Virus record (IMG/VR): IMGVR_UViG_3300020469_003050
Coordinates: 62,001 to 126,000 of that record
Length of the DNA: 64,000 nt
Reading direction: 5' to 3' (one strand)
Shown in pieces: positions 26,551-53,301 of the stretch (within the stretch, counting starts at the first letter, position 1; each line of letters begins with the position of its first letter). The translations under genes and the position numbers were made by a program. The notes beneath the pieces are model-generated. The model was not told the DNA's origin. It searched no databases and saw nothing but the letters and a program-made list of their open reading frames with translations.

Positions 26551-26605
26551 AAACTTGACAATATCAAGAATCGTGTTATTATGTATACATAATGAAAAAC
26601 AAAGG
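26550..26605 (+). repeat. 56-bp promoter+RBS block, copy 2
   Basis: Near-identical to 18837-18892. Confidence 0.9.
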
Positions 26606-26615
26606 TAACTCAAAT

Positions 26616-34760: not shown

Positions 34761-34761
34761 C

Positions 34762-36189: not shown

Positions 36190-37414
36190 TCATCTCCGTA
36201 TCCTCAAAGTTCTTTTCTCCGTTTCCTCTGAAATCTAATTCTTTTCCACATGTCTTGCCACATATCCATAATCTGTCAGGAGAGTTTATCTCCCAACTAT
36301 CTACTAAATCATTTGAAAAGTATGGTGAGTTTAGTATATCATGAATGCTATGCTTTGACAAGTCATTAAATCCTTCTCCGTATTTTCTATTCATAATAGC
36401 ATTGTCTTCGATACGTCTAGGTGTTGCCATGTCATGTCCTACTTTACTGTAGTAATGTCCTTGCCAACAACAAGGCCAAACTTTACCTTCGTAATCTACA
36501 AATATACTTTTATCTCTCATAGTCTGACAAGCAATGTCTGTAGCTTTTACATAATTATCAAATGTCTTATGTTTCTTAATCACTTTTTCAACGTTGTTTG
36601 TTGTATTTGCATTATCTGTTTTCTCTGGTGCCTTCAATATAGTAGCCATTGCTTTTGCTTTTTCTTCTGTAGTTTTTGCTTTTTTCTTTTCCATGGCTAC
36701 GTGTTGTTTCGCAACAAATTTCAATTCTGTTTTTGTTTCTACTTTTTCTTCTTTGTCGCCTGCATAATGTGTAGGTATTACATAGCGATTAGATTTCTTA
36801 TATCTAAATTTAACAAAGCCCATCTTATCTGCTAATGCTTTGGCTTCTTCAATTTGATGTTCGTTGTGTGCAAATGCAATAAAGTCCCATCTTGCTAGTC
36901 CACCAGCATCTATGAATGCCTGTGCATTTTCCATTATCTTGTTAAAGTTTGTATTCACTCTATATAAATGATTAGTATCCTCTAACCCATCTACTGCGAA
37001 AATAACTTTATCAGGCTTTCTCATTATACTTGCTAACTCTATCCACCACTCTGGTTTATGTACTGAACCATTCGTACTCAGCGTTACTTGTGGAACTCCA
37101 GCGTCTTTGTACATTCTTATAATCTCTAATAGATGAGGATACATAATTGGATCACCAAAGTTACCATTGATAAAAACATGATTAGGTAAGAACGGTTTCA
37201 TTTCTTCTATCATGTTTGTTAACAACTGTGGATCTGTATCAAGTAAATGTACATCATCACGTTTCTTTAATACTACTTCACCACCTTCTACTGCACCATC
37301 CATACCAGTAGTTCTTCCACACATAGGACATAATGCATTACATCGTGAGGTTAACTCTAAGTGTAACACACCTACATCAAATTTTATATATCTTAGTTTC
37401 TCTTGCTTCGCCAT
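36176..37414 (-). CDS. Radical SAM protein with C-terminal SPASM-like domain (class B)
   Basis: CNALCPMC, GNFGDP, YRVN and PCCW...CGKTCG. Confidence 0.9.
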   Translation of the reverse strand: MAKQEKLRYIKFDVGVLHLELTSRCNALCPMCGRTTGMDGAVEGGEVVLKKRDDVHLLDTDPQLLTNMIEEMKPFLPNHVFINGNFGDPIMYPHLLEIIRMYKDAGVPQVTLSTNGSVHKPEWWIELASIMRKPDKVIFAVDGLEDTNHLYRVNTNFNKIMENAQAFIDAGGLARWDFIAFAHNEHQIEEAKALADKMGFVKFRYKKSNRYVIPTHYAGDKEEKVETKTELKFVAKQHVAMEKKKAKTTEEKAKAMATILKAPEKTDNANTTNNVEKVIKKHKTFDNYVKATDIACQTMRDKSIFVDYEGKVWPCCWQGHYYSKVGHDMATPRRIEDNAIMNRKYGEGFNDLSKHSIHDILNSPYFSNDLVDSWEINSPDRLWICGKTCGKELDFRGNGEKNFEDTEMNEYA

Positions 37415-38994
37415 TTTAAAAATAACTCTTCCGGATATCCGTATGCGTGATTAATTTCTTCTAATTTCATTCCTCTAGTTGGTGAACCATCCCAATCTGC
37501 ACTATGCAATCTAAGATGTTTGTTTTTATCGCACATTTTCTTTACTACTTCTTTGTAGATATCTCTACGTTCTTCATATGATAGTAACCACGTAGTATAT
37601 CTTGTTGTAATATAATTACTACTCCATACCACACTATCAAATCCTTCTTCATGTGGTTGAATTCTATCTACAAGAGGCTGATAGTCTCTACATAAATCTG
37701 CTACTCCGTATGTTATATTAGGATTATGTTTAACTTTCTCATGCATTTCATAGAAGTCTTCCATTGTATCAAAGATTCTTAGAATGCTTTTTTGATATGC
37801 CTCTTTTGCTTTTTCTCTTTCACTATCCCAATTAGGTGACATGAAATCAAAGTCTTCATAAATTGATATCAGGGCTTTATCAGTCTTATACCATTCATCG
37901 TGTAAATAATCTAAGTACTGATTAAAGTCTCTCGGATCCCATTCAGTGTGTAACCATTTTCTTGCTTCTAAACTGTTCTCTGATATATCAAAGTAATGTA
38001 GACCTACATTCTCTACATCAGTATTAGGGTTCCAATTATTTAAGAATGCAAATGTTTTAAATCCTGCGGCTACACTGTAAATATTCTTTAGTGGAAACTT
38101 TCTAGGAACAAATATAACATCATTTACTGACTCTGTATTCATAACCCATATGGCATCTGGTGAGCGTTGAACTGTATAGGCTTGATATTGTAAGAAGTCT
38201 TTTTTAGTTTGACCTAGATTACTTTCGTGTGCTTTAAAGTTAGCACAATCTTCTCTAAAGAACTTTTTGAATTCTTCTTGTTCTTCTTTAATCTCTGGAT
38301 ACAAATATGTTTTAGTCTTACGAGCCTGCTCATCAAAGTTTAATACTGATAGTCCTGCTTTTAAACTCTCATTGATTAGATTCCAACCAAAGCCTGTACG
38401 ATTAATTGTTTCTTGTTCTGTTCCCGGTGACAAATACTTAGGCGTATGTCCGTCATGAAAGTTTTCTGTACTTCTCACAGCCTGTCTAACTTCCTGTTGC
38501 TTAACCCCAAAGTCTCCAAACGCAGGTCTTCCCATTGCTTTCCACATAGGATAATTGATAACGAAACATTGCTCATGTAATCTAAACCATCTATCTTTGT
38601 GTTGGTCATCAAGTATATGTCCCATTAATAAAAACTTATTTGCTTTAGCATCTGCTAACCAATCATGATTGCAATACTCTCTGAATAAACTATAACCATG
38701 TTCCAGTGGTTGCCACGTATCATATAATATGTTACCGTATGCTTGAACTACTAAAAGAACAATATCACTTTCTTCTGGATCATTGGCTAAGTCTGCTAGT
38801 ATCTTATCAACTGTATCCTCTTCGTAAATCTTATGTCTATAATGACTGTAATTGTTTCTAAGAAAGTTATAAGTCATCTGTCTAGTGTATTGTGATATTT
38901 CGTCATCACCAATAGTTTTAGATGTATCTAATACTGCACATCTAACTCTCTTGCTAAAATTGGTTGAACGTTGATGGTCTGTGTGTTTAGTCAT
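37393..38994 (-). CDS. Hypothetical protein (533 aa)
   Basis: Long ORF within the operon; no recognised motif. Confidence 0.6.
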   Translation of the reverse strand: MTKHTDHQRSTNFSKRVRCAVLDTSKTIGDDEISQYTRQMTYNFLRNNYSHYRHKIYEEDTVDKILADLANDPEESDIVLLVVQAYGNILYDTWQPLEHGYSLFREYCNHDWLADAKANKFLLMGHILDDQHKDRWFRLHEQCFVINYPMWKAMGRPAFGDFGVKQQEVRQAVRSTENFHDGHTPKYLSPGTEQETINRTGFGWNLINESLKAGLSVLNFDEQARKTKTYLYPEIKEEQEEFKKFFREDCANFKAHESNLGQTKKDFLQYQAYTVQRSPDAIWVMNTESVNDVIFVPRKFPLKNIYSVAAGFKTFAFLNNWNPNTDVENVGLHYFDISENSLEARKWLHTEWDPRDFNQYLDYLHDEWYKTDKALISIYEDFDFMSPNWDSEREKAKEAYQKSILRIFDTMEDFYEMHEKVKHNPNITYGVADLCRDYQPLVDRIQPHEEGFDSVVWSSNYITTRYTTWLLSYEERRDIYKEVVKKMCDKNKHLRLHSADWDGSPTRGMKLEEINHAYGYPEELFLKWRSKRN

Positions 38995-39793
38995 TCACTT
39001 TTTCCCAACTGTCTATCATAATATCTTCATAACTTTTGCCACCATACTGTCCGTGTACAATCATATGAACTCTTACTTCATCTGTATCATTCATCACTGC
39101 ATGTTGATGTCCCACATTCATCTTAATCATACGACCAGGTTTCCACGGAACATATGCATTATCGTCAATCATTTTAAAATAACAATGCTCGGGATTGTTT
39201 AATGATATATTCAATGGTCCTAACTTATTATGTTCATAATCATTATGAGGAGTAATGTATCCGCCTGGTTCTAAGTACATATAACGAACTCTATCGAATG
39301 ACATATAACCTGGAATAGACTTAATCATTTCTACTGTCTTAGGACATTTGTCTGCAATCTCTGTCCAATGATATGCTTCTCTCACTTCTTCTTCGCTTTT
39401 AAAATCAAAACCCATGGCTTTAACATCTTTACTATCCCAATGCTGAGATACATGTTTACCTAAACCATGTAATGTTAAACTACGCCAGCCTCTGTGTCCA
39501 TAATCATCTGGGTTACTTTCATCGTAATCATTTTTTCTATGTTGAATAGCTTCATTATACACTGCCATTGCTTCGCCCCAACATGCTTTCCAATCGAACT
39601 CAGGAACATCTAACTCTAACCAAGGGATGCCTGACTCGTGTGAAATCCATTTAGCTTTTCTGAATCTTGCTGACTCTGGAAACTTAGGCTCATTGAATAT
39701 TGCATCTATAAATGCACTAGGTACAGTATCAAAACTATAACTATTTCTATCTTTAAATACTTCTTCGATTATGTTTGGGTAATTAATTGTCAA
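38987..39793 (-). CDS. Asp/Asn beta-hydroxylase-like 2OG oxygenase
   Basis: LEPGGYITPHND, HAVMN and RVHMIVH. Confidence 0.8.
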   Translation of the reverse strand: MTINYPNIIEEVFKDRNSYSFDTVPSAFIDAIFNEPKFPESARFRKAKWISHESGIPWLELDVPEFDWKACWGEAMAVYNEAIQHRKNDYDESNPDDYGHRGWRSLTLHGLGKHVSQHWDSKDVKAMGFDFKSEEEVREAYHWTEIADKCPKTVEMIKSIPGYMSFDRVRYMYLEPGGYITPHNDYEHNKLGPLNISLNNPEHCYFKMIDDNAYVPWKPGRMIKMNVGHQHAVMNDTDEVRVHMIVHGQYGGKSYEDIMIDSWEKVND

Positions 39794-41330
39794 TGTCTAA
39801 CTCCTGCTGATTAACGTGAAACCCTGAATCTTCTAACTCTTTTAGTAATCTATCATCGAACTCTCCGTCCCAATCTTCACCATCTTCTGGTGTCCAATCT
39901 AAAAGAGGAGCCATCTCAGGAAACACATCTCTAAAATTTGTATCTCTTATACCGTCCATCTTATTGATATACTCAATAAACTCTGGCATACGTTGTCGTG
40001 ACCAGTCACCACTATTCATAAATGAAAGCATACCTCTTAGTCTTTTAATACCGTAGTTTGCATTTTTCCATTCATCATAGTTTGTGACACCATCACATTT
40101 TTCCCAGTTTGCATCAAGCCACTCAATAAACTTGTCATACTTTGCAACTGTCATTTCTTTGAACCACTTAGGTAAAACTTTAACATTTAAATGAGGTGGG
40201 TGATAAACAAAGTGATAGTTAATCATACCTGCACCTAGTGGCCATAAGTTAATCTTTTTAAAATTCTGTTCAATCTTCCACTTAACAAAGTCAGGAAGAT
40301 AATATATGTTAAGAGCCTGAACTGCACAAGCAACTGTAACTTCTACGTTAGGTCCTGTGTTATCTAATAAATGAAATTGTCTTACTGTGTGTTCCCATTC
40401 ACTTGGAAAACGTATGTAATCATTCATAAGACCTATACTGTCTACGCTATAATGGAAACGTACACGCTTGAATTGTTTCCACAAGTCAAATAAACGTTGT
40501 GGCATTTCTAAACCATTTGAGTTATATCTTAATTCAATACCGGGAGCATATCCTCTTTCTACAACTTCTTCAAGTAAAGTATAATGTTCTTCAATGATTG
40601 TAGCTTCCCCACCAGCAAAGTATAACTGTTTCATATGTGGGATTTGGTCATACAACTGATCCCAAAATGCATCATTCTTTTTATGCCAGTTATATGTTGC
40701 ACCATCTATCTGACCTTTGTTACCCCATTGCATAGTTTCTTTTAATGATTCGTTTTCAATCTGTGGATGTAATTTAATCCAATCTTTAACCCACATTGAA
40801 CTGTCATGAGGAGAACACATAATACATTTAAGATTACATTTAGAACCTAAACGCAAGTCTAAGTATCTAATCTTTGGAGGGATTGCACCGTCTTCTGTTG
40901 TCTCATCAAGTATCTCTTTCATATCAACTCTACGAGACCAGTACTCTGTTTCCCAATATCTTTTTGACATATGACCTGCATCTTCCTCTTTGTAACATTT
41001 CATACAACTAGGAGGCATTTCGTTATTAAGCATTTGCTTTCTAACATTCTTCATATAATCATTATTCCAACTTGACATCAAGTCACTATGATTTAAGTTT
41101 GAAGGTTTACCATCAGCATTTTTTAGAACACCTACTTCTCCGCCGTGTTCTTTATCATTTGTAGGACCAACTGAACTTGCATTTGCCGTACAACATACAC
41201 GCATATGTCCATTAGGTCTTGTACTTAAATGAACCCACGGTAACAAACAAAATGTTTTTGTAGGTGCACCTGTTCTTCGAACAAATTCGTTTAAGTTTTT
41301 CTCTAATTCTGGATTGTTTTTCTTGGACAT
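39783..41330 (-). CDS. Radical SAM protein with N-terminal Twitch-like domain (class A)
   Basis: FCLLPW..RVCC..CMKC; CNLKCIMC; AGGEA. Confidence 0.9.
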   Translation of the reverse strand: MSKKNNPELEKNLNEFVRRTGAPTKTFCLLPWVHLSTRPNGHMRVCCTANASSVGPTNDKEHGGEVGVLKNADGKPSNLNHSDLMSSWNNDYMKNVRKQMLNNEMPPSCMKCYKEEDAGHMSKRYWETEYWSRRVDMKEILDETTEDGAIPPKIRYLDLRLGSKCNLKCIMCSPHDSSMWVKDWIKLHPQIENESLKETMQWGNKGQIDGATYNWHKKNDAFWDQLYDQIPHMKQLYFAGGEATIIEEHYTLLEEVVERGYAPGIELRYNSNGLEMPQRLFDLWKQFKRVRFHYSVDSIGLMNDYIRFPSEWEHTVRQFHLLDNTGPNVEVTVACAVQALNIYYLPDFVKWKIEQNFKKINLWPLGAGMINYHFVYHPPHLNVKVLPKWFKEMTVAKYDKFIEWLDANWEKCDGVTNYDEWKNANYGIKRLRGMLSFMNSGDWSRQRMPEFIEYINKMDGIRDTNFRDVFPEMAPLLDWTPEDGEDWDGEFDDRLLKELEDSGFHVNQQELDIDN

Positions 41331-41337
41331 ACTGTAT

Positions 41338-42408
41338 TTATTTCACCTTAATTTTCGTTACTTCTGTGTCCGATACACAACTGCACCAAGTTTGTGGGCA
41401 TATTAATCCATCTGTAGGAAAGTCTATTTCATCTGGTTTGTTTATATGTCCATGAACTAGTTTAGTAAAACAACTGTTACCACTTGTTATAGTTCCATTT
41501 AATTGAACAACTAATGCTTCAATTCCTATCATACACTTCCAGCCTTTCCACGTATTGTGTCCTTGTTCCATAATATGATTTGGGTTATTGAATACTACTG
41601 ATTTGCCTGTCTTAGTATTAAGATAACGCATTTGTTTACCCATACTTTTTCTAAGGAACTTTCTTTTTGCTACAAGATGTACTGCTTCTTTTGAATCACT
41701 TTGTTCTATATCTTGCCAATGCTTTGGTTGTCCATCATATCTACGCAATATTTCAAACGCACCTTCTGGATATACAAACGTATTGTTACTGCCTAATGTT
41801 TCTTGTAATGCTTTTGAATTATGCGTTATACATTTAGAATTCTCATGGTAATACTTTGCCGCTTCAATACATCTATCAAGTAACGGAGGATATATAGCTG
41901 ACTGAATAGAACATATTGTTCCCTTATCCATAAGTATGTTTGATACATCTGTTACATGTTTATAATCTGCACTTTGTGGATGATAACTTATAATAACTTC
42001 ATCAAATATATTTGCATTCTTCTCCCACCAGCGTAGGGTTCTTGAACCATTGGTCAATATTCTCACGCTGGAACTTGAGTCATATTCTTTCATTTTATGA
42101 AATACCTCTGAGAACTTAGGCCATACTGTTGGTTCGCCACCTAATAAGTTCCATAGTATTCTTTTACCTGGTGCATACTTTCTGTAATGGTCTGTTAATC
42201 TTTTTGTAAACTCTAATACTACATCAACTTCTGGCCAAGGAGTTGAACCATCATGAAACTCCTCATCACAATAAGTACAGGCATAATTACAGGTATTACC
42301 CATCATCCAATCAACTACGATATAATCATTACCAACTATAGGTTCGTATCTATCATATTGACTATGATACGAATCATTGGCTTTATATCTTAGTTTTAAT
42401 TCAGCCAT
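41338..42408 (-). CDS. Radical SAM protein (class C)
   Basis: WMMGNTCNYACTYC, GGEPT and WKCMIG...CPQTWCSC. Confidence 0.9.
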   Translation of the reverse strand: MAELKLRYKANDSYHSQYDRYEPIVGNDYIVVDWMMGNTCNYACTYCDEEFHDGSTPWPEVDVVLEFTKRLTDHYRKYAPGKRILWNLLGGEPTVWPKFSEVFHKMKEYDSSSSVRILTNGSRTLRWWEKNANIFDEVIISYHPQSADYKHVTDVSNILMDKGTICSIQSAIYPPLLDRCIEAAKYYHENSKCITHNSKALQETLGSNNTFVYPEGAFEILRRYDGQPKHWQDIEQSDSKEAVHLVAKRKFLRKSMGKQMRYLNTKTGKSVVFNNPNHIMEQGHNTWKGWKCMIGIEALVVQLNGTITSGNSCFTKLVHGHINKPDEIDFPTDGLICPQTWCSCVSDTEVTKIKVK

Positions 42409-43499
42409 TACTTGAACTGCTCCGCAAATGCATCGAACTCTTTACCACATTTCTGTGAACATACCATTGGTTTCCCTGCATGTACATTTGGTTGTTTCCA
42501 ACTATCTACTAATCTATGAGAAAAGTATTCATTGTTTAATACATATTCTATTCCATGTCTCTTAGCATCAAATTCATCTTTACCACCTGACTGTTGTAGA
42601 AGTTCCCATACTTGATTTTCTCCTGGCTTCTGCCACCACTTATACATATTACCAGCTACCCAACAACATGGAAGAATTAATCCTTCTGCACTAATATACA
42701 TATTCTTTTCAGCCGCAACTTTACAACTGATTTGTACATTATCAAAATACTTTTCTAATGAACCATGCTTGTTTGTAATTTCTTTAATCTTATCTAGTGC
42801 TTTATTCTGATACTTAACTTCCTTTGGTTGTTGTAGTAATTGTGTTTCAGCACCTTTTCTATTCTTTGCTTGATGTTCATCTTTCTTAACTTGTTTCATT
42901 GTAGAAAAGAAACGACCTGTCTTTTTAGGTATGAACTTTTTAAAGCCTGTTTTCTCTGCTAATGCTCTAGCCTCTTCTACTTGATGTTCATTGTGTTCAA
43001 AGATTAAGTAATCCCAATGTGCTTTACCACCTGCCTCAATAAACGCTACCGCATTTTCCCACGCTATATCCCAATTAACATTCTGTCTATATAAATGATT
43101 TGTATCTTTCAGTCCATCAAATCCAAACTTAACATAACTCCAGTTACCTAATGTCTTTGCTAATTCTCTCCACCACTCTGGTTTCTTCGCACCAGCGTTG
43201 GTATTCATTCCCAGCGTTAACTCCCGTTTCTGTGAACGAAAGTATTGCATGACTTCTAATGTATCTTTAGCAACAATAGGATCACCAAAGTTACCACACA
43301 TATAAATTCTTTCTAACTGCTTTACAAACTCTGGAGGCATCATCTCCTGAATATCTTGTAATGATAATTCATGCATACCAAGATTAGGATTATCTTTACC
43401 ACCATGTACGTTTCTATCGCACATAGGACAAGCGGCTTGACACTTTTCAGTTATTTCCAAGTGTATTGCTCTTACTTCATCATATTTGTAAATCATCAT
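42408..43499 (-). CDS. Radical SAM protein with C-terminal SPASM-like domain (class B)
   Basis: CQAACPMC, GNFGDP and PCCW...CSQKCG. Confidence 0.9.
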   Translation of the reverse strand: MMIYKYDEVRAIHLEITEKCQAACPMCDRNVHGGKDNPNLGMHELSLQDIQEMMPPEFVKQLERIYMCGNFGDPIVAKDTLEVMQYFRSQKRELTLGMNTNAGAKKPEWWRELAKTLGNWSYVKFGFDGLKDTNHLYRQNVNWDIAWENAVAFIEAGGKAHWDYLIFEHNEHQVEEARALAEKTGFKKFIPKKTGRFFSTMKQVKKDEHQAKNRKGAETQLLQQPKEVKYQNKALDKIKEITNKHGSLEKYFDNVQISCKVAAEKNMYISAEGLILPCCWVAGNMYKWWQKPGENQVWELLQQSGGKDEFDAKRHGIEYVLNNEYFSHRLVDSWKQPNVHAGKPMVCSQKCGKEFDAFAEQFK

Positions 43500-44775
43500 A
43501 GTCCTTTTTTATGATTTCATATATTTCTGGTATGTAATCTTTTATGTGTTGATTTCTTACTTTATCAAATCTCTTTGTTGCTCTTGCTAGATGTATAGGA
43601 TTATATTGTTCCTTGTCATTCAACATTTGATATAATGCAGGAATAACTCTATATGAATATCTGTTCTCCCATGGTTCAATCTCTTTTATTAACGAATAAA
43701 TGTATGGAGTACGAATATCTACTGGGATATTTCTTATTGAAGACCACTCTGGTGTTCTAAGAATCTCTGGTCTCATAGTTATACCTATACTTTGTGCCCA
43801 CTTAATCGTATCAAGCAAATTAAATAAATTATATGCTTGCCATGTAAAACTTATTTCACTTACCGCATGTGGATGTTTTTGTGCTATTTCATGATATAAT
43901 CTAATTGTTTTGTCTATCGTTTTAAATTTAACTGGTGTTCTGATATATTCAACTACTGATTCAGTTCCATCAATACTATAATTGAATGATACGTTATTAA
44001 ACTTTGCTAATTTATCAACAAATCTTCTATTATTATTTGTACAGTTTGTAGTAAAATGTAATGGAACATTAAGATATTTCTTATCAATTAATATATCTAA
44101 GAACTTATCAACTTCTGGCATAATAGTGGGTTCTCCGCCTAAGAACTTAATTCTATTTCCTTTGTCTGCCGCTTCTAATAAAAATTCTATATTATGCTCA
44201 TTTGCTAAAACATCTGACCTTATTATCTTTCCATGACCTAAAATAGGACGTAATAATTCTTGATTATCTTGTACTTCTTTTTCTATTTGTGAACTTGATA
44301 TAGGTCCGCACATTCTACATTTTAAATTACATAAGTTGCCTGGTCTAACGTCAATATCTATTGGTGCATTCCATTGATTACCTGTTTCTATATTTGGTTC
44401 AATCTTTGTACTGTACATAGTATTGAAATTAATTCTATCACTTCTACCACCTGCACTTTCTAAGTTATAACATTTAACACAAACATCTGGTTGTTCATTA
44501 CGCAAGAATTTCTTTCTGAACTCTTTGTAATAATCATTACTCCAACGTTTCTTTAAATCTAATTCAGTATCATCTTCTACTACATTGTACTCGGTTGACA
44601 TACAACAAACTCTTTGCCCTTCATTACTGTGAACATACATATGTGCAAATGGTGCCGCACAAAAGTTACTTGTATCGGCTTTGCCATTTTGGTGTTCCTT
44701 CAACAATTCTTTAAAAGCCTCTCTTGCTTTTATTTTCTCTTTGTCTATATAACCTCTGACTTGAGCATTTTTCAC
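43480..44775 (-). CDS. Radical SAM protein with N-terminal Twitch-like domain (class A)
   Basis: FCAAPF..RVCC..CVKC; CNLKCRMC; GGEPT. Confidence 0.9.
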   Translation of the reverse strand: MKNAQVRGYIDKEKIKAREAFKELLKEHQNGKADTSNFCAAPFAHMYVHSNEGQRVCCMSTEYNVVEDDTELDLKKRWSNDYYKEFRKKFLRNEQPDVCVKCYNLESAGGRSDRINFNTMYSTKIEPNIETGNQWNAPIDIDVRPGNLCNLKCRMCGPISSSQIEKEVQDNQELLRPILGHGKIIRSDVLANEHNIEFLLEAADKGNRIKFLGGEPTIMPEVDKFLDILIDKKYLNVPLHFTTNCTNNNRRFVDKLAKFNNVSFNYSIDGTESVVEYIRTPVKFKTIDKTIRLYHEIAQKHPHAVSEISFTWQAYNLFNLLDTIKWAQSIGITMRPEILRTPEWSSIRNIPVDIRTPYIYSLIKEIEPWENRYSYRVIPALYQMLNDKEQYNPIHLARATKRFDKVRNQHIKDYIPEIYEIIKKDYDDLQI

Positions 44776-46188
44776 TTATTTCTCTCCGATAATCATATAC
44801 CGGTTGTAATGCTCCAATTCTAGTGTCCCAGTGAATATATTTTTAGATAGTTTCAACTCTTTAGCCCAACTATCAACATCTGTTTTAGTATTAACAACTG
44901 TTTCATCTTCATGTTCAATAAAATCATTATTCTGTAATATCACTAGTGTACCCTTTGGAATAGCATTCCACCATTTGTCAAACTCTGCAATATGTTCGCA
45001 ACTTGTATTGATTACACATGTTGGATGACCAATAGTATGTGTTGTATCCATGACTTCGAACTTAACTGCATCACTGTATTTATAATGTTTTATTGGCAGT
45101 GTTTCCTCAGAAAACTTCAATTCTGCTATATCTTTTACGAATGATTTGAACTTCATATTGTCAATTATATACTCTTTATTGAGTGTATCTGCTGGATTAT
45201 CTGTAGTAGGATCACTATCAAAGCTATAGATATTACCTTCAATCTTGCATCTTTCAAACAATAATGCTGGTAAAACTCCATACCAACCTGCACAAGTGTA
45301 AATAGTTTTACCTAAGTTTATATCATAATTATTCACAATGTCAATTAACCACAGTTTAGACTGTAACTGTCCTCTACTAAATGCATCAGTCAACGCTTGA
45401 CCTTCAAATCTTTTAGTCATTTTCTTCATATTCATAGGAATACTATACTTGCCTTCAGTAAGAGTGTGAACTAATTCAAATACTTTTGTTTTAAATATTG
45501 TTGCACTTTTTACGTTAGCAATATCTTCATTAGATTCATCAAAACCCTGAATAACTTTAAATAATAAATATAAGTCTGGATCAGTATCAACTGCAATAAT
45601 ATTTTTTAATGCACTTAATATTTCATCATCAGGGTATTCAATATTCATTATTACTCTGAATAATAATTCTGTTTGTGATTTAATAAAATTATGATTACCA
45701 CAAACATTTTTTAATGCACCTAATCCTTCTTCATCATCTATTATTTTTTCTAGTACATTAAATAATAAAAATACTAAGTCTCTATCAAACTCACCACCTT
45801 CCGCACAAATAGTATTTTTTAAATCATCTAATGTATCTGCATTGTCTGGATACATTCCATTCAAAACTCTAAACACAAGATACATTGATTTTCTATCAAT
45901 AGTTTCACATGCCATAAAGTTTCTTAATGCGTCCAATGAATCATCGTTTTGAGATATTTTGTCTAACACTTTAAACAGGACGAATGTGTTATCACAAACT
46001 TGTCTCTCATAAACGAGATTCATTAGAGCATTCATATTCGCTCTATGTTTCTTACCTAAGAAGTAAGAGCATAAAGTAAATATACTACTGAGTTCCTCAG
46101 TATTAACAACTCTTTCTAATTCAGATAGCATAGGTCTACTATTCCCATAAAGGAGATTTAATCTATCTGCAATTTCATACGGCTTCAT
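44776..46188 (-). CDS. Helical-repeat protein fused to SAM-dependent methyltransferase-like domain
   Basis: About 6 LFxV...L.ALKN repeats; DAFSRGQLQSKLWL, CAGWYG, SFDSD and INTSCEH. Confidence 0.6.
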   Translation of the reverse strand: MKPYEIADRLNLLYGNSRPMLSELERVVNTEELSSIFTLCSYFLGKKHRANMNALMNLVYERQVCDNTFVLFKVLDKISQNDDSLDALRNFMACETIDRKSMYLVFRVLNGMYPDNADTLDDLKNTICAEGGEFDRDLVFLLFNVLEKIIDDEEGLGALKNVCGNHNFIKSQTELLFRVIMNIEYPDDEILSALKNIIAVDTDPDLYLLFKVIQGFDESNEDIANVKSATIFKTKVFELVHTLTEGKYSIPMNMKKMTKRFEGQALTDAFSRGQLQSKLWLIDIVNNYDINLGKTIYTCAGWYGVLPALLFERCKIEGNIYSFDSDPTTDNPADTLNKEYIIDNMKFKSFVKDIAELKFSEETLPIKHYKYSDAVKFEVMDTTHTIGHPTCVINTSCEHIAEFDKWWNAIPKGTLVILQNNDFIEHEDETVVNTKTDVDSWAKELKLSKNIFTGTLELEHYNRYMIIGEK

Positions 46189-47132
46189 TACTTAAGCCCC
46201 ATTTTCAAAAAGAATTGTTTCGATCCAACTGTAATCACTCCACTGTACTGTTCGTATGACATTGGAAATCTTAAGTTGAAATTTTGTGAACTAGGAAAAG
46301 GTCTAGGGACATCTCCTGTTTCGCCAACTAATACCACTCTTTTAGTGTCTGGTATCATATCATACCAATCCTGGAAATTGGTTAGATAACTTACACTGCA
46401 ATTAATGATAGTACCTGGGATCTCATTGTATGGAGTAGATAATTTTCCATCAGCTAAACGTGTTTGAAACTCATTTTCTATATAATTAACCTCAAACAAA
46501 TCTTGCGTATTTGATTTAAATTTCCAATCCTGCAATAATTCTTTTTTGTGAAATTCATCTGCTAAGAACTGACACGTACCATTAATATCGAATGAACGAA
46601 TATTCTCAAATCGCATCTTAGTATCTAAGAGCATAGAACCTAATAATCCCATACCCCCTCCTAATAGATAAACAACACCAATATATTTCTGACCATATAC
46701 GTAAATCATTTGTTGTACAATCCAACTATACAGTTTTGCATTATCTTTATTTGCAAATGTACTCATATCTACGTTAGGATAGTTATATATTATTTCTTTA
46801 AATCTATCGACAATAGTATCATTGTCTGTTAAATTAACGTGTGCTAAGAATTCCATTGCACATCGATAATTATGTAATTGCTGACTTACGTTCTCTAAAG
46901 AATATTCAACTGCCATTTTCTGATAGTCGTATTCTTTTACAAGTAAGTCACGCCTTCTTTTAGTCTTTCTGTTAGGCTTTTCTGTTATTTCAATAGTTTC
47001 ATTTTTAGGAATATCAGGTAATTCTTCTGAACTTATATCTACTGACGGATCTTTACTGTCGTAAAGGTCATCTGACTTTGTAATTTTACTTTTGTCAAAC
47101 CTAGCCTTTCTTCTTTCTTTTATATTACTCAT
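46188..47132 (-). CDS. Methyltransferase-like paralog
   Basis: LGGGMG, RSFDIN and INCSVSY, aligning by eye with the neighbour's C-terminal domain. Confidence 0.5.
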   Translation of the reverse strand: MSNIKERRKARFDKSKITKSDDLYDSKDPSVDISSEELPDIPKNETIEITEKPNRKTKRRRDLLVKEYDYQKMAVEYSLENVSQQLHNYRCAMEFLAHVNLTDNDTIVDRFKEIIYNYPNVDMSTFANKDNAKLYSWIVQQMIYVYGQKYIGVVYLLGGGMGLLGSMLLDTKMRFENIRSFDINGTCQFLADEFHKKELLQDWKFKSNTQDLFEVNYIENEFQTRLADGKLSTPYNEIPGTIINCSVSYLTNFQDWYDMIPDTKRVVLVGETGDVPRPFPSSQNFNLRFPMSYEQYSGVITVGSKQFFLKMGLK

Positions 47133-49902
47133 TGTTAAAGTCCTGTTTAAATTGAGAATTTAACCAATCATAGTCATTGATTAATCCTAGTTTTTCTGGG
47201 TTGTCTGCGTTCTCACTACCAAACTTTCTGCCAGCGTTTGCTCCTGCAACTGAATACTTACCATACTTTGCATTATCATCAGATACAGTACACCAAGTAT
47301 CTAATCGTTCTTTATCCTCATCTGCTTTGAGATTATGAATAATACCTGAACTCAACTTAGTACACTCTCTGAAAGCAGACTTCCAGGTGTCGTATGGGTT
47401 AGTATTAAATGCGGTGTAGTTAGCAACTACAGGCATAGGTTTAAACTTTTCTGAAATTGATGTAGTAAAGTCAATGTTCCAATCTTTCGCATCACGTAAT
47501 AATTGTGTTGGAAATAATTTAAGTCCACCGAAACCATATATTAATCCATTGATAGGATTTTTAGACTTCCAAACATGAACTGCATCTTCGTCCCACACTG
47601 TAGGAAAGTATTCGAACTTAAATTCATCTAATAATATTGCATCTGCATCAAGTACATAAAACATTTTCGTATCTGCAACTTCGGCCGCACGTTTATGAGC
47701 ATTAAAGATACCTTTAACTCCGTGAACTCGTTTTGCATTTGGTACACGTGAAAGTAATTTAGCATAGTTTTCTTCTGCTTCTTTTTCACGATAGGAAAGA
47801 AACACTACATCAAAGGGTATATCGGCTGATGATGGCGTCTTCGATTTGACTGGCTTTTTATTCTTAAAATTCATCTTACGAATTTTATCATCATCCGGCT
47901 TCAATTCTTTTAGAGCGGCAGTGGGTATAAGGCTCAGTCCACCATATTGATGAACGTAACCAGTGTAGGGATTAGACTTAGGCCATACATGAAAATGTGA
48001 TTTATGGTGTCTGTCTACATAGAATGTTCTACTGAAATCTTCTGTTAATTCTACATCATTATTGATAGCCCAAAAATAACCTGACTTGGTCATCTTCGTT
48101 GCTCTCATATATGCTTTTGCAAGACCTTTACTTGCATCAATTACATCGATATTCTCATGGTCGTTAAAGTACTTGGCATGTTCTTTATACATACCTTCAT
48201 CGAAATAAAATGCAGGATGTCCTACAACTCTACTCGCAACTTCATCAACTCTGATAATATTTTTAAATCTATCGAATGAGAAGTCTTGCTCAGTTAGTTT
48301 AAACTTATCTAAGTGAGGTCTATGAACTAAATATACTCCAGCCTCTTTGCCTTCTTCACTTTTAAATGCAAATACATTTTCGATAGAAAAGATATCGGGA
48401 TAGTAATCAAATTGAAAATCATCTAACAACTCTACCGCGGTATCTATTACCCAATAAAACACTCTACCCTTTGACTGCTTATATGCTTTGAAAGGATCAC
48501 GTGTAAAATACTTTTTAATATTATGTTTATCTGGTATTCTCATACCATAACTATCATGCAGATTTACATTATCTGGATGATAATCTTTATTACTGAATGC
48601 TAATCCACCATGACCTAAATCTTTACCTGTTCTTGCACGTTGTCTCCATATATGTGTTGGACCCAAGTTATATAAATCAGGATAAAAATCATCAATCATT
48701 GGATTAATTAATTTTAAATCTGGATTGACCATCCAGAAAGTATATTCTTTTGCAAGTTTAACTGCTTCTTCAACTGTTCTTGCTTCAACTATTTCTATTT
48801 CTTTTAATCTACCTACAATTAAATCAATATCTTTTTGTTGTTCTTCATCAGGTTTATGAGGAACAAGTCGTACACCGTTACGCACAGGCATACCAGTTGA
48901 TGTATTAACTTTAAAATTATGAATTTTATCTCTATCGTAAATAAATGGATAGAAATTAATATCAAATTCTTCTACATCATCATGAATTAACCAATACATA
49001 TCTGTATCAACTTCGTGACTTAAATCATGCATGTCTTTTGTTCTAATTACAGGAAACTCTAAATCTTTACACATAGCATCTTTTTCATAGACTGCTTTCT
49101 TTTTAAAGTTAAATATTTCGTAATCTTTTTCTTTAAACATAGGACCTTCTTTAGGAAATAATCCTAGTCCATGATATTCACGTGTTAAATTAGTTATTGG
49201 ATTTTGTTTCTGCCATACAACTACTTTTTGTTTCTCTTTATCTAAGCCAAACGCAAAAGAATAATCAAATTCGAATTTATTAAATATTTCTGTATTAGGA
49301 TGAATTAAATAATAAAAATCAGTACGAGTCATTTCTCTGCACTTAGTATGCACATCAACATTATTATCGCCAGTAACTGTTTTTATTTCAGGAAAGCGTT
49401 GTTTTAATCTTTTTAAATTAACTTTACCGTAGTCTTTTTCCCAATAAAATATTTCATATGTTTCTGTTGTTGGTTTATATTTTACGAATTGTTTGGTATC
49501 ATGCTCTTTGAACTCTCCAGTCAAATAATAAGCATCTTTGATATGTTCTTCTGATTGTTTTAATACTTCGCTAGTCTTAAATAATTTGACACCAACAACT
49601 GAACGCCATGAATTTCTTTCATCAGCATTCCAGACATGAGTTATATTTTCATCCCATTCATTGGTCTGAAAGTCATAATCAAAATGTGGATTGACTTCGA
49701 CATCTGGATCAATAACCCAGAAGTGTTTAGTATTAGCAACGGTACCAATTTTCTTGATTGCTGACGTTAACTTAGGGTCATTCCAATCTTCTAAATTGAT
49801 TTTAACCATACGAAAATTAGGGTACTTTTCTTTTATTCTATCGTACCTTTCGTTGGTCTCTCTATCGTTCTTATATGTTAGAAAAAATCCATCGTAAGCC
49901 AT
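47125..49902 (-). CDS. Multi-repeat GT-A glycosyltransferase-like protein
   Basis: Seven ~120-aa repeats; the last has GVKGIFNAH..FYVLDAD (DxD). Confidence 0.65.
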   Translation of the reverse strand: MAYDGFFLTYKNDRETNERYDRIKEKYPNFRMVKINLEDWNDPKLTSAIKKIGTVANTKHFWVIDPDVEVNPHFDYDFQTNEWDENITHVWNADERNSWRSVVGVKLFKTSEVLKQSEEHIKDAYYLTGEFKEHDTKQFVKYKPTTETYEIFYWEKDYGKVNLKRLKQRFPEIKTVTGDNNVDVHTKCREMTRTDFYYLIHPNTEIFNKFEFDYSFAFGLDKEKQKVVVWQKQNPITNLTREYHGLGLFPKEGPMFKEKDYEIFNFKKKAVYEKDAMCKDLEFPVIRTKDMHDLSHEVDTDMYWLIHDDVEEFDINFYPFIYDRDKIHNFKVNTSTGMPVRNGVRLVPHKPDEEQQKDIDLIVGRLKEIEIVEARTVEEAVKLAKEYTFWMVNPDLKLINPMIDDFYPDLYNLGPTHIWRQRARTGKDLGHGGLAFSNKDYHPDNVNLHDSYGMRIPDKHNIKKYFTRDPFKAYKQSKGRVFYWVIDTAVELLDDFQFDYYPDIFSIENVFAFKSEEGKEAGVYLVHRPHLDKFKLTEQDFSFDRFKNIIRVDEVASRVVGHPAFYFDEGMYKEHAKYFNDHENIDVIDASKGLAKAYMRATKMTKSGYFWAINNDVELTEDFSRTFYVDRHHKSHFHVWPKSNPYTGYVHQYGGLSLIPTAALKELKPDDDKIRKMNFKNKKPVKSKTPSSADIPFDVVFLSYREKEAEENYAKLLSRVPNAKRVHGVKGIFNAHKRAAEVADTKMFYVLDADAILLDEFKFEYFPTVWDEDAVHVWKSKNPINGLIYGFGGLKLFPTQLLRDAKDWNIDFTTSISEKFKPMPVVANYTAFNTNPYDTWKSAFRECTKLSSGIIHNLKADEDKERLDTWCTVSDDNAKYGKYSVAGANAGRKFGSENADNPEKLGLINDYDWLNSQFKQDFNNE

Positions 49903-49928: not shown

Positions 49929-49957
49929 ATTATAGCAGATTACGTCTTGCTTGTAAA
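49929..49957 (-). promoter_or_regulatory. Minus-strand sigma70 promoter
   Basis: Reverse complement reads TTTACA-N17-TATAAT with TG extension, upstream of the 925-aa gene. Confidence 0.6.
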
Positions 49958-51505
49958 GACCAAAGTTTTGTAATAATTCGCAAAATCCCTAGCATCTTGC
50001 TCGTTATTGACTATTGGCATACCTTTGATATTCAGTGAAGTATTCAGTAACATAGGACAACCTGTTTTATCATAAAAACGTGTTAATAATTCATGTAGAC
50101 CTGCATGTTGTTCTTTGTTAACTGTTTGGACACGTGAAGTTCCATCTTTATGAATAATTGCTGGAAAATCTTTTGGGTGCTTACACTTAGCTATGAACTG
50201 CATATAAGGACCTGAAGGACCATCGAAATAATCATTCACGTATTCTTCTAATATCATAGGCGCAAACGGTCTGAACTGTTGTCTGCGTTTTATTTCATTT
50301 ACAGTATCTTTTATGTCATTCCCTCTAGGATCTGCACATAAACTACGATTACCTAATGCACGTGGACCGAACTCTGCACGACCTGATGCTATACCACAAA
50401 TAGACCCTTGAAGTAAAGCATTAAGTACATCTTCGACAGGATACTCTCCAGGTATGTCATGTCCAAGATATGGGCTTTTCCATTGAATTCTTTCACGTGA
50501 ATATTTCTGAGCAACACCGATACAACTACCAGCATCGCCAGGATTAGGCATAATCCATACTGACTTGAAATAATCTTTTATCATACTATTCGCACTACAA
50601 TTTAAAGCACAACCACCCATCAGAACTAAATTCTCTGAGTGACACATTGCTTTAGATTTAATTAATATTTCGGATAGTATCATTTCATACACATGTTGCG
50701 TTGCGGCGGCTAAGTCGAATAAGTCTTGTTCCTCTTTTAATTCAGGTAAGAACCATCGACAACCACGATGCAAATTCTGTGTAAATTTAATTAGGGTATT
50801 CTTTTGCATAGTATATCCAACTAATCCAGACTCATGAATAATACCGAACTCATCATATATATGTTGAATTAATTCTTTACCTTCATATAATCTGTGTGGA
50901 TCACCATAAGCGGCCATACCCATTAAAATATATTCATCTTCGTTAGGCTTTAATCCAAGACGTTGAGTCATTGCTGAATAAAATAAACCTATTGAACTTG
51001 GATAACTCTGAGAATATACTTTCTCTAATCTCATTCCATGTCCCTTCCAGAACGTAAGTGTTTCGAATTCTCCTATTGAATCGATAACAACTATCGTAGC
51101 TTCATCATACGGCGAAGTAAAGTAACCACTTGCGGCATGAGTATAATGATGCTTTTGATATTTAATTGGAATATGTTTTAATTGTGGAAACTTTTCTAAG
51201 TATTGACTCGGTAATTCAGACGTATCTAAACTTAATTTCCATTGACCTGCACGTAATTGACGTAATTTTTTAAGCATTGGTTTCTCATACCAAGCAATTA
51301 AATCAGGCTTACCCCCATAATGAATAGCATCTGTTAATAGAGCCTCATTTAAATCAGGGTCATTTTTCTTTTTAGAATAACGTTCCGCATGCCCGGCGAA
51401 TTTAATCTCGCCTTCATCAATAATAGCTACTGCGGCGTCATGATTTATGGCACCACTAATACCCATTATTACGGGTTCACGCCTATTTATAAATGAACGG
51501 ATCAC
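49940..51505 (-). CDS. Carbamoyltransferase (NodU/CmcH family)
   Basis: HDAA, HAERY, HHYTHA, EFGPRALGNRS, RPFAP and LNTSLN. Confidence 0.93.
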   Translation of the reverse strand: MIRSFINRREPVIMGISGAINHDAAVAIIDEGEIKFAGHAERYSKKKNDPDLNEALLTDAIHYGGKPDLIAWYEKPMLKKLRQLRAGQWKLSLDTSELPSQYLEKFPQLKHIPIKYQKHHYTHAASGYFTSPYDEATIVVIDSIGEFETLTFWKGHGMRLEKVYSQSYPSSIGLFYSAMTQRLGLKPNEDEYILMGMAAYGDPHRLYEGKELIQHIYDEFGIIHESGLVGYTMQKNTLIKFTQNLHRGCRWFLPELKEEQDLFDLAAATQHVYEMILSEILIKSKAMCHSENLVLMGGCALNCSANSMIKDYFKSVWIMPNPGDAGSCIGVAQKYSRERIQWKSPYLGHDIPGEYPVEDVLNALLQGSICGIASGRAEFGPRALGNRSLCADPRGNDIKDTVNEIKRRQQFRPFAPMILEEYVNDYFDGPSGPYMQFIAKCKHPKDFPAIIHKDGTSRVQTVNKEQHAGLHELLTRFYDKTGCPMLLNTSLNIKGMPIVNNEQDARDFANYYKTLVFTSKT

Positions 51506-51599
51506 GCTTCTTTAATTCCTCTAATCTCTTTTTCATTTCTCTACGTCTTTTAAACTCTGTCCAAGGATAAAGAATTATATCAATTATCTTTCTAATCAT
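51483..51599 (-). CDS. 38-aa peptide ending PFIYK (not in ORF track)
   Basis: MIRKIIDIILYPWTEFKRRREMKKRLEELKKRDPFIYK; ATGA-coupled to the upstream gene, AAAGGA RBS. Confidence 0.65.
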   Translation of the reverse strand: MIRKIIDIILYPWTEFKRRREMKKRLEELKKRDPFIYK

Positions 51600-52315
51600 G
51601 ATTTATTTCCTTTAATATCCACATGTAATATCTCTGCCCATTCGGCATGAGCCTCTTCATCTGGATGCATATATCGTTCATCTCCTTCTACAGGAAAGAA
51701 CTTTTTATTTTCATACATATAAGTAAAAAACGTTTGGTCTTCATATATTTTACTCATATCTAATTGTTTATAAACTGAAACCATATCACTTTGCTCACAT
51801 AACTCAGTAAACTTAGTTGGCTCTAATAAATTAGGTGTTAAATTAAGTGAATTAAATATTATATAAGGTATCTTATTAGCAGTAAAGAAATTCTGGAGTG
51901 TCATTAAATGAATTAAATAACAATGAAAATCATATACTGGTGACCAGAAATGCTTCATATACAACTGATTAAATAAATCTAAATCACGGTTGTTTTGCTC
52001 ATCTAAATTAATATTCCCATGATATTCATGCGATGGAATATTATGAACTAATAAATTCTTTTTCTCAATAAAATGCTCTCTACGATTAGGAGCGGTCATA
52101 CCAATAGCAACGAAATCAACTGTTTCTTTATTAACTAATTTATCGCTTATAGTAGTAATAGTATTACGAACAATATAATTATTCGATACCCCACGCTGAG
52201 CCTCAGTCTCTACTCCATCAATATTCATTTTATCAGCTAGAATAAAAGGCCATGCTCGGTCTTTATGGGCTAGACCAGTTCCATAAGTGAAACTGCATCC
52301 GTTTGCATATAACAT
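51596..52315 (-). CDS. SGNH/GDSL-like hydrolase or acyltransferase
   Basis: NGCSFTYG, GVSN and HPDEEAH. Confidence 0.7.
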   Translation of the reverse strand: MLYANGCSFTYGTGLAHKDRAWPFILADKMNIDGVETEAQRGVSNNYIVRNTITTISDKLVNKETVDFVAIGMTAPNRREHFIEKKNLLVHNIPSHEYHGNINLDEQNNRDLDLFNQLYMKHFWSPVYDFHCYLIHLMTLQNFFTANKIPYIIFNSLNLTPNLLEPTKFTELCEQSDMVSVYKQLDMSKIYEDQTFFTYMYENKKFFPVEGDERYMHPDEEAHAEWAEILHVDIKGNKS

Positions 52316-52325
52316 ATTTTAATCC

Positions 52326-52925
52326 TTATTCATTATTATATCTGAAACAGCCAAGTAATGCAAGTCTTTTTTGGTCTGAATTGACTACTTGATGTTCCCA
52401 ATTAGTATTAATGTACCAGACATCTCCAGGAGTTTGCATTTCTTTTACTACTGCTTTGCGTTTTTTAATCTCAAAACTCTGAATACCATTTAATACACAT
52501 ACAAATCTATCTAATTCAGGTTGGTCTATATGCCAAGGTAAAGTCTCATTTGGCTCCATAACTGCATATCTTAGACGATATACTGGACCACCTAATATCT
52601 TTTCTAAACTTTCAACTGCTGGTTTAAGTCTTAAAAATCTCTCATCTAAGTAATTAAAATCTGTTTCTACAGGCTCATAGTCTGGATCATCATAACGAGT
52701 ACGCTGGAACGTTTGGATATCACGCTGGTCATAACCCGCTGGCATATAAGAATCTTGTTCTTTATACATACCTGAACGTGAACGTAATGCACTAGTAGAA
52801 GCCATAGTCGAACTTGCCGTGTGAAAACAATCTCTAAAAAGATGAATTTCTGGACCCGTAATAGAACCCATATTATCGAATAGGGGTAATTTAATTCTTT
52901 TATTTGCTATTGCTCTGCGATCCAT
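52326..52925 (-). CDS. Asp/Asn beta-hydroxylase-like 2OG oxygenase
   Basis: LPWHID, HQVVN and RLALL; start reassigned to ATG 52925 after AGGAG. Confidence 0.7.
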   Translation of the reverse strand: MDRRAIANKRIKLPLFDNMGSITGPEIHLFRDCFHTASSTMASTSALRSRSGMYKEQDSYMPAGYDQRDIQTFQRTRYDDPDYEPVETDFNYLDERFLRLKPAVESLEKILGGPVYRLRYAVMEPNETLPWHIDQPELDRFVCVLNGIQSFEIKKRKAVVKEMQTPGDVWYINTNWEHQVVNSDQKRLALLGCFRYNNE

Positions 52926-52980
52926 AGGAAACTCCTGATAAATAATATCTGTACATAATGTATTTATACAAGAAGGGATT

Positions 52981-53217
52981 ATGAGTAAAACACTAAAAGT
53001 ACTTAAAGAACTAGCATTAAAAGACCATGAGGTAACTCTAACAGAACAACATATTAGTGCGGGAACCAAGTTTTCAGAACTAGGAATAGACAGTTTAGAT
53101 GCAATAGAAATGATGGTATCGCTAGAAGACGAACTAGACATAGAACTCAACAACGACCGATTAGAGAAGATTTCGAACATCGCACAACTAGTAGAGTATC
53201 TACGAGAGTTTGATTAA
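52981..53217 (+). CDS. acpP: Acyl carrier protein
   Basis: 78 aa, acidic, LGIDSLDAIEM phosphopantetheine motif and LEDELDIEL. Confidence 0.9.
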   Translation: MSKTLKVLKELALKDHEVTLTEQHISAGTKFSELGIDSLDAIEMMVSLEDELDIELNNDRLEKISNIAQLVEYLREFD

Positions 53218-53301
53218 AAGAAAAAGGCAAGGGCGTAGCCCGGAGCGAAGCGACTTCTTCGGCAAATTTTTTTGGAGCTGATAAACAACTGACTTATTAA
53301 T

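Follow-up and report, generated by a model that had tools for sequence, protein, structure and literature searches.

We analysed 64,000 nucleotides of marine virus DNA (the window), which are bases 62001-126000 of the 342,607-bp record IMGVR_UViG_3300020469_003050; the record has direct terminal repeats and an estimated completeness of 100%. Within the window we identified a gene for a stand-alone acyl carrier protein, ACP1. Judged by its sequence, ACP1 is a real, functional-looking carrier that is distinct from the AcpP of fatty-acid synthesis (FAS) and is predicted to undergo 4'-phosphopantetheinylation, and its family is small and phage-restricted. The closest evolutionary partners of ACP1 appear to be a cupin and a small radical S-adenosylmethionine (SAM) enzyme, not the SGNH and GNAT proteins named in an earlier note on this DNA. 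The comparative data best support a carrier-protein-dependent pathway whose genes are distributed over the phage genome, a reading towards which we lean with guarded confidence.

ACP1 matches the PP-binding family PF00550 with E 1.7e-12 and 47.9 bits (cut-off 20.8), and the phage protein family phrog_5934 with E 2.5e-11. Its Ser38 sits in the sequence GIDSLDAIE, and the motif DSLD is invariant in an alignment of 15 members of the ACP1 family. In an AlphaFold2 model (pLDDT 86.9) the protein forms a bundle of four helices, the second of which (residues 38-52) has Ser38 at its N-terminus, and the top Foldseek matches of this model are type II acyl carrier proteins (ACPs; TM 0.77), including B. 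subtilis malonyl-ACP and many AcpP structures. The earlier description of a carrier with an intact DSL serine, 55 bp from and head-to-head with a large minus-strand operon, therefore stands. Orthologs at 86-97% identity retain the head-to-head layout with the cupin, the ratio of nonsynonymous to synonymous substitution rates (dN/dS) against a 90%-identical ortholog is 0.15, and contigs from a marine metatranscriptome library cover the gene at 52968-53118 and 53130-53282. Given these three observations, ACP1 is more than a chance open reading frame (ORF), with the library coverage taken as presence in the library and not as proof of transcription.

Shine-Dalgarno-like sequences, GGAG and AAGGG, precede the two divergent start codons in the spacer between ACP1 and the cupin gene, and ACP1 is followed by a terminator-like site, so that its transcription unit looks monocistronic. 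The RNA-library contigs over the cupin gene stop at 52954 (two runs of one sample). Together with those over ACP1, they are suggestive of two back-to-back transcripts, with the limits that contig ends do not prove transcript ends and that DNA carry-over is possible. A sigma-70 scan detected no sigma-70-like site within the 55-bp spacer. The spacer does contain, on the operon strand, the T4-type late-promoter motif TATAAATA; we dropped the promoter reading because the motif is rare genome-wide (28 copies, 6 of them upstream of ORFs).

A word-based protein search with ACP1 returned nothing beyond orthologs at least 86% identical, and a DNA search with the ACP region against GenBank phages gave no match. 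A profile search of 1.8 billion representatives placed ACP1 and ACP2, a second carrier encoded elsewhere in the genome, in a family of only ~8 clusters at 50% identity. Beyond the family itself, what the profile matches best is not AcpP but the ACP domains found in giant multi-ACP synthases. Against the AcpP equivalog model TIGR00517, which has a cut-off of 70.45 bits, ACP1 scores 47.3, ACP2 46.8 and a third carrier, ACP3, 68.8, all below the cut-off. A 33%-identical ACP of a 470-kb megaphage (L018) was judged to be unrelated; its neighbours are NAD-salvage, kinase and phosphatase genes. Sequence near-identical to window positions 51000-54500 recurs in marine and viral metagenomes of 13 studies, and the phage lineage is thus widespread in seawater.

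The genome encodes three carriers in total and one phosphopantetheinyl transferase, AcpS; ACP2, ACP3 and AcpS all lie outside the window (Table 1). ACP1 is thus not the lone carrier that the earlier note had taken it for. The same note had reported no phosphopantetheinyl transferase in the window, which is correct, and had advised a search for a phage enzyme of this kind; the search recovered AcpS, well above its family cut-off. ACP2 belongs to a radical SAM-ACP2-hydrolase module 130 kb from ACP1. In the region genome 32729-34363 (L003 94-1728), a second IscA gene and a nitroreductase-like gene are found just upstream of the IscA-ACP3 gene pair. In E. coli, an interaction of ACP with the ISC iron-sulfur cluster system is reported in a 2026 mBio paper (PMC13343975).

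We compared gene layouts across related loci (L-numbers) and across 45 related IMG/VR records (G-numbers), most of which are fragments. We coined the name ABH for the alpha/beta-hydrolase family of the 340-amino acid (aa) protein beside ACP2. Where the window has ACP1 alone, the operon in G001, G025, L042 and L043 faces the series radical SAM-ACP-ABH333-ABH340, and in L046-L048 a radical SAM-ACP pair precedes the small genes that also lie 3' of ACP1 in the window. L039 and L040 have two ACPs, the first placed between the cupin and SGNH-like genes and the other within radical SAM-ACP-ABH. A lone ACP is head-to-head with an only 43%-identical cupin in L105, and in L103 and L104, short contigs that end soon past the ACP, an ACP faces a 41%-identical cupin. 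A cupin-anchored scan added L119, in which a co-directional trio of small radical SAM, ACP and cupin genes occupies another genomic site, by a MetK homolog; in G040 the cupin faces a small radical SAM gene at the contig end. The cupin adjoins a family ACP in every lineage where both were seen. From these layouts, the cupin and the small radical SAM enzyme are the most stable partners of the ACP family, and ABH is a frequent one.

The ABH gene is absent from the ACP1 locus itself and present beside ACP2 and in the modules of relatives. Its position shifts by lineage: after the ACP in most, directly after a beta-ketoacyl-ACP synthase (KS) gene in L041 and G002, and last in the operon, after RpiB, in G040. 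Taken together, the cupin/radical SAM-ACP-hydrolase(s) set appears to form an accessory island at the operon head in relatives. In the phage studied here this island seems to be split, with the cupin and ACP1 at the operon head and the radical SAM-ACP2-hydrolase module at its distant site. The claim of the earlier note that SGNH and GNAT enzymes act on the carrier holds insofar as a GNAT-like gene is present in the ligase/KS cassette described below and the SGNH-like gene is two genes from ACP1; neither is as close a partner as the cupin and the small radical SAM enzyme. Three tandem paralogs on the minus strand of the window (59696-63172; 334, 412 and 415 aa, with 45% identity between the two longer ones) have homologs by the ACP module in G001.

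The cupin and ABH families of the island have clear catalytic residues. An alignment of the cupin family shows invariant H132, D134, H178 and R187 (HxD...H plus Arg); the cupin has a weak Cupin_2 match and an Atlas feature score of 0.98 to an Asp_Arg_Hydrox/cupin viral cluster. In ABH (333-345 aa), S185 (in DSKH), D288, D312 and H321 are invariant across a 22-sequence alignment, and the AlphaFold2 model (pLDDT 90.8) has an alpha/beta-hydrolase fold like those of esterases and thioesterases. Searches of Pfam, NCBIfam and PHROG with the 340-aa protein gave no match. The alignment and the model point to a new family with a Ser-Asp-His triad, for which we infer a thioesterase or acyl-shuttle role. 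The best subfamily matches of the small radical SAM enzyme (~310 aa) are TrsS, MoaA, Tes and BlsE, all far below cut-offs.

The plus-strand ligase/KS cassette has an invariant core of ligase, halogenase, GNAT-like and KS genes; the desaturase-like genes are dispensable, as they are missing from clade C (records G008 and G020-G023). The best NCBIfam match of the ligase is a long-chain fatty-acid-CoA ligase subfamily. PDB matches of the halogenase include PrnA, RebH and the cyanophage enzyme VirX1 (PDB 6qgm). The GNAT-like protein, which is kept in all cassette variants, has Atlas structure matches to GNAT families at TM 0.58-0.69. Aligned to 4jga, the KS has the TACSTG, HGTST and GH motifs and a complete triad, and the phage genome encodes neither FabD nor any reductase of the short-chain dehydrogenase/reductase (SDR) type, including FabG; the KS must therefore use ACP-bound substrates and host helpers. 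A tblastn search with the KS against GenBank phages gave matches of 35% identity or less, mostly to short or unannotated records that probably contain host fabF, and none in the Ralstonia phage RsoM2USA. In PHROGs, the KS has only a marginal match and AcpS has no family. No PP-binding match falls within 20103-26550, and the genome has only three such matches; the cassette lacks an ACP, as the earlier note had stated. The AAA ATPase and DUF2201 genes that bracket the cassette are directly adjacent and cassette-free in the distant relatives L097 and L098, suggesting that the 6.5-kb cassette is an inserted island.

Separately, we noted a second minus-strand operon at genome 38891-45042 (L011 2392-8543), which encodes a short 236-aa AMP-binding core, a 182-aa GNAT-like paralog of the 206-aa cassette protein, three sulfotransferase-like paralogs and a PP-loop ATPase. 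The 182-aa gene adjoins the short AMP-binding gene (genome 43.8-45.0 kb). A similar pair, an AMP-binding gene (233 aa) plus a 192-aa ORF, is found in L097, where a homolog of the small radical SAM enzyme and an IMPDH-like gene come before it.

The phyletic pattern suggests a link between the carriers and the cassette. The KS is found in 19 of the 45 records. Some type of ACP was detected in 10 of these 19, and of the nine without one, most are fragments with an estimated completeness of 4-20%. An operon-head family ACP is always accompanied by the KS and cassette (7/7 records), and none of the 21 KS-negative records with the SGNH-carbamoyltransferase operon has any ACP. This KS-negative, ACP-free set includes G005 (342 kb, 92% complete), G006 (246 kb) and G007 (203 kb). 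In the KS-negative lineages SGNH is the first operon gene, and the cupin/ACP block is missing while the flanking genes are conserved. The earlier note held that an ACP common in genomes lacking both clusters would speak against its proposal; the cupin-ACP island was never seen in a record lacking the cassette. AcpS was detected only in the KS-positive records G000 and G008, the latter being the only one among the relatives. ACP3, where found in KS-positive records (G008, G010, G011, G015 and G021), directly follows IscA, and at the corresponding place in the KS-negative G005 (paired IscA) and G028 (HscB-like and two IscA genes) there is no ACP. Clade C has a minimal ligase-halogenase-GNAT-KS cassette; G008 and G021 also have ACP3, and G008 has AcpS. 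Given the movement of ABH, the phyletic pattern and the ACP3-IscA pattern, we regard the cassette, ACP3 and AcpS, joined in a subset by the cupin-ACP island, as scattered but co-distributed accessories, the island being confined to lineages that have the other three as well.

The operon that faces ACP1 consists of ~20 co-directional, tightly packed minus-strand genes spanning 21 kb, from 52925 down to 31549. The SGNH identity of its DUF6071 protein is a reading of sequence motifs. The carbamoyltransferase probably starts at 51466 instead of the GTG at 51505. The 38-aa ORF between these two genes is very basic, ends in KRDPFIYK and is kept in all relatives examined (called in L005, L039, L042 and L105). 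It is the sole small ORF, and nothing resembling the leader or core of a precursor peptide was identified. Several of the seven radical SAM proteins of the operon have SPASM-like parts. The closest isolated relative is the Ralstonia solanacearum jumbo phage RsoM2USA (343.8 kb; L096 is MG752970 109476-139035), whose carbamoyltransferase is 49% identical, with further homologs in many cyanophages, and whose radical SAM gene is 52% identical. These identities suggest that the marine phage group is distantly related to this soil phage. The two share the operon core (radical SAM, SGNH-like and carbamoyltransferase genes), which is older than the ACP and cassette accessories.

Table 1. Carrier proteins, operon and cassette features. 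Positions are those of the window unless marked as genome positions.
Feature	Position	Strand	Description
ACP1	52981..53217	+	78 aa, stand-alone; Ser38 of DSLD as the predicted phosphopantetheine site
Divergent spacer ACP1/cupin	52926..52980	.	Exactly 55 bp; divergent minus-strand start at 52925
Terminator-like hairpin and T-run	53246..53271	+	3' of ACP1
Cupin	52326..52925	-	First operon gene; 199 aa, Asp/Asn-beta-hydroxylase type; putative Fe(II)/2-oxoglutarate (2OG) oxygenase
DUF6071 protein, SGNH-like	51596..52315	-	PF19547 E 1.4e-9; N-terminal GCSFTYG, GVSN, C-terminal DEEAH
Conserved 38-aa basic ORF	51483..51599	-	Between SGNH-like and carbamoyltransferase genes; ATG overlaps SGNH stop (ATGA)
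NodU/CmcH-type carbamoyltransferase	49940..51505	-	Carbam_trans_N E 1e-42, Carbam_trans_C E 1e-52
Remaining operon	31549..49902	-	925-aa GT2-like protein, two proteins of unknown function, seven radical SAM proteins, two Asp/Arg-hydroxylase-type oxygenases, 533-aa protein of unknown function, aminotransferase-like protein and RpiB
MoxR-like AAA ATPase	18879..20030	+	Brackets cassette together with DUF2201 gene
AMP-forming ligase	20103..21467	+	454 aa; closest solved relatives 4-coumarate/feruloyl-CoA ligases
Flavin-dependent halogenase, tryptophan-halogenase family	21470..23146	+	PF04820 E 4e-88; phrog_2928
Fatty-acid-desaturase-like paralog	23146..23871	+	241 aa; accessory, missing from clade C cassette
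GNAT-fold acyltransferase-like protein	24032..24652	+	206 aa; core cassette member
FA_desaturase-family protein	24642..25418	+	258 aa; PF00487 E 7.5e-11; accessory
FabF-like KS	25402..26550	+	Cys-His-His triad
DUF2201 metallopeptidase/VWA-like protein	26592..27935	+	Partner of AAA ATPase; other bracket of cassette
ACP2	genome 245086-245319	-	58% identical to ACP1; between ~312-324-aa radical SAM gene and 340-aa hydrolase gene
ACP3	genome 34124-34363		AcpP-like; directly 3' of IscA/HesB-type gene
AcpS phosphopantetheinyl transferase	genome 315977-316390 (L004 1471-1884)		137 aa; TIGR00516 85.7 bits vs cut-off 59.8

We propose that AcpS would convert the phage ACPs to their holo forms and that the ligase, which resembles 4-coumarate-CoA ligase (4CL), would adenylate a carboxylic acid and load it onto ACP1 or ACP2. 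While bound to the carrier, this group would be a substrate for hydroxylation by the cupin and for modification by the small radical SAM enzyme. The KS could possibly add one malonyl unit from malonyl-ACP3 or host malonyl-ACP; more than one round of extension would need host reductases. Finally, an ABH, GNAT or SGNH-like enzyme may release or shuttle the product, or transfer it to an acceptor that the large operon builds. This operon could act on a sugar or a nucleoside just as well as on a peptide. A still more inclusive version would join AcpS, the three ACPs, ligase, KS, halogenase, GNAT, ABH, Fe/2OG oxygenase and ~17 radical SAM enzymes, with the phage SAM synthetase and IscA-type Fe-S carriers, into a complete scattered secondary-metabolite pathway that, during infection, would put an ACP-built halogenated or hydroxylated acyl unit on a heavily radical-SAM-modified peptide or glycan. 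The outcome would be a hybrid natural product made by the virus, or a decoration of the virion or cell surface; we consider this version unlikely.

Several observations count against a distributed pathway. Loading of ACP1 by the ligase is something that we infer, and ACP3, which is AcpP-like, would be just as natural a partner of the FabF-like KS. The distance between ACP1 and the cassette (26 kb in this phage, 26-30 kb in records with both) is uninformative, because synteny is conserved. The operon core occurs without any ACP in G005 and without ACP, AcpS or KS in RsoM2USA. In cassette-bearing clade C, cupin and ACP are both missing from the operon head, and the available fragments (13-35% complete, at most 127 kb) contain no family ACP, cupin or ABH, the last sought even at E 0.01. 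A tree of the family ACPs (78 columns) does not resolve the history of ACP1 relative to ACP2, nor whether lone and module ACPs form distinct orthologous groups. The co-occurrence may also reflect few gain or loss events in related phages, most records being fragments. The proposal of one distributed system in the earlier note thus fares well in the phyletic pattern and the movement of ABH and poorly in clade C. The co-occurrence check that the note called for likewise gives a mixed answer: the operon-head ACP tracks the cassette, and the operon core is independent of the ACP.

Alternatively, ACP1 and ACP2 may serve only the local cupin-radical SAM-ABH module and the adjacent operon, being primed or acylated by host enzymes or another phage enzyme, with the cassette as a separate system that uses ACP3 or host AcpP. 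The cupin and the small radical SAM enzyme are the tightest neighbours even when the trio is elsewhere (L119), clade C pairs the cassette with ACP3 and AcpS in the absence of an operon-head ACP, and ACP3 scores near the AcpP cut-off that ACP1 misses widely, the ACP1/ACP2 profile pointing next to giant multi-ACP synthases. However, ABH shifts among the ACP module, the KS end of the cassette and the operon end, the island was found only together with the cassette, and in L097 a small radical SAM homolog adjoins a short AMP-binding gene and a 192-aa ORF, echoing the pair at genome 43.8-45.0 kb. We rate this separation as fairly improbable. It is less probable again that the ACPs, AcpS, KS, desaturases and ligase (as an acyl-ACP synthetase) are auxiliary genes for host fatty-acid and membrane-lipid synthesis, with ACP1 an extra FAS carrier. 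Phage ACPs are a known auxiliary class (phrog_5934), the KS is FabF-like, FA_desaturase-family genes are present, the best NCBIfam match of the ligase is to long-chain fatty-acid-CoA ligases, and type II ACPs of FAS can be superposed on the model of ACP1. Yet it is the desaturases that are dispensable, and the invariant core includes a Trp-type halogenase and a GNAT, for which bulk lipid synthesis has no use. Both ACP1 and ACP2 fall below the AcpP equivalog cut-off and occur in association with a hydrolase, an oxygenase and a radical SAM enzyme, and the phage lacks FabD, FabG and SDR enzymes.

We think it very improbable that ACP1 is a functionless copy left behind by duplication and relocation of the radical SAM-ACP-hydrolase module. 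Such an origin would fit the 58%-identical paralog in a complete module elsewhere in the genome and the lack, at the ACP1 site, of the radical SAM and hydrolase genes that relatives have there. It fits poorly with the low dN/dS, the intact DSLD, the Shine-Dalgarno-like sequence before the gene and the terminator-like site after it, and the coverage in the RNA library. Moreover, lone ACPs facing the cupin recur in L105, and L039 has one between the SGNH-like gene and the cupin.

The genome also encodes ~17 radical SAM proteins, counted by paralogy to Pfam-confirmed members, at window 33597-44775 and at genome 137439-146886, 9335, 56062, 208229 and 302964. A second cluster of these genes lies just past the 3' end of the window, and several paralogs have an N-terminal SPASM-like Cys-rich part ahead of the radical SAM core. 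A phage SAM synthetase, MetK, with all three domains is encoded at window 10223-11371 and plausibly feeds these enzymes. We also identified an SbmA/BacA-like transporter (window 15006-15980; a very strong match of 461 bits), which is unusual in a phage; in bacteria, this family imports peptide antibiotics. The window further encodes a xanthine/uracil permease-family transporter (4363-5655) and an HtrA/DegP-like trypsin-PDZ protease (16787-18058).

If the pieces cooperate, phages would encode carrier-protein biosynthesis of their own, beyond boosting host pathways. Carriers encoded by phages are usually recorded as isolated auxiliary genes that serve the lipid metabolism of the host. In this phage ACP1 appears to belong to a modular set of ACPs, AcpS, KS, ligase, GNAT, halogenase, ABH, oxygenase and radical SAM enzyme. 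The members of this set, though scattered over the genome, are found together in marine jumbo phages of a widespread group. The shifting position of the ABH gene offers a handle on which pieces interact. The analysis also defines two uncharacterised families with clear catalytic residues, the putative Ser-Asp-His hydrolase and the ACP-linked cupin.

Being small, stand-alone and of the PP-binding family, ACP1 resembles the phage-encoded phrog_5934 carriers classed as auxiliary metabolic genes. The present case differs from these in that the genome has three ACPs and its own AcpS, along with a ligase, a FabF-like KS, a GNAT and a dedicated hydrolase. The coronamic acid (CmaA-E/CmaT) and syringomycin (SyrB1/SyrB2/SyrC/SyrP) systems use carrier-tethered tailoring with an Fe/2OG enzyme and an alpha/beta-hydrolase shuttle. 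By analogy, the phage may share their logic of a stand-alone carrier by a cupin-fold Fe/2OG enzyme with an iron-binding triad, a separate adenylating enzyme, more than one carrier and an alpha/beta-hydrolase with a triad beside the carrier (here at ACP2 and in relatives, not at ACP1). It differs in that the cupin has a hydroxylase-type HxD...H triad and not a halogenase-type site, in that the adenylating enzyme, the sole full-length ligase, is 4CL-like, unfused and 26 kb off, neither fused nor adjacent to the carrier, and in the addition of a radical SAM enzyme and a FabF-like KS. We compare these systems by gene logic and make no claim of membership.

In hybrid lipopeptides of the goadvionin and selidamide type, a GNAT attaches ACP-bound acyl chains to ribosomal peptides. 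The phage arrangement may be analogous in clustering a GNAT-fold gene with a KS, near radical SAM and hydroxylase maturase-like genes; it differs in having no convincing precursor peptide, only the conserved 38-aa ORF. JamABC and TtuABC are ligase-desaturase-ACP cassettes for terminal alkynes, and JamD is a flavin halogenase. The presence in one phage genome of a ligase, membrane-type desaturase-like proteins, an ACP and a flavin halogenase is reminiscent of these, whereas the phage ligase is short and 4CL-like. We rejected membership, as the ACP is not adjacent to the cassette, which contains none, and the clade C cassette lacks the desaturase-like genes.

Cyanophage clusters of carbamoyltransferase, halogenase, 2OG-dioxygenase and cupin genes (for example, in S-SSM6a) have been predicted to produce a halogenated metabolite or to decorate polysaccharides (Iyer et al., PMC7824862). 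The phage studied here likewise has genes for a carbamoyltransferase, cupins, 2OG oxygenases and a halogenase of the amino-acid type. Neither 'radical SAM' nor 'acyl carrier' appears in the text of that paper, and thus no ACP, KS, AcpS or radical SAM battery is described for those clusters; this phage is nearer to RsoM2USA. Finally, a report on mitomycin biosynthesis (PMC8621148) describes a carrier, MmcB, that is loaded by an acyl-AMP ligase and modified while tethered. That pathway, as described there, differs in being actinobacterial and encoded by contiguous genes; its use of a stand-alone ACP as the handle for several tailoring steps may be analogous to the part that we propose for ACP1.

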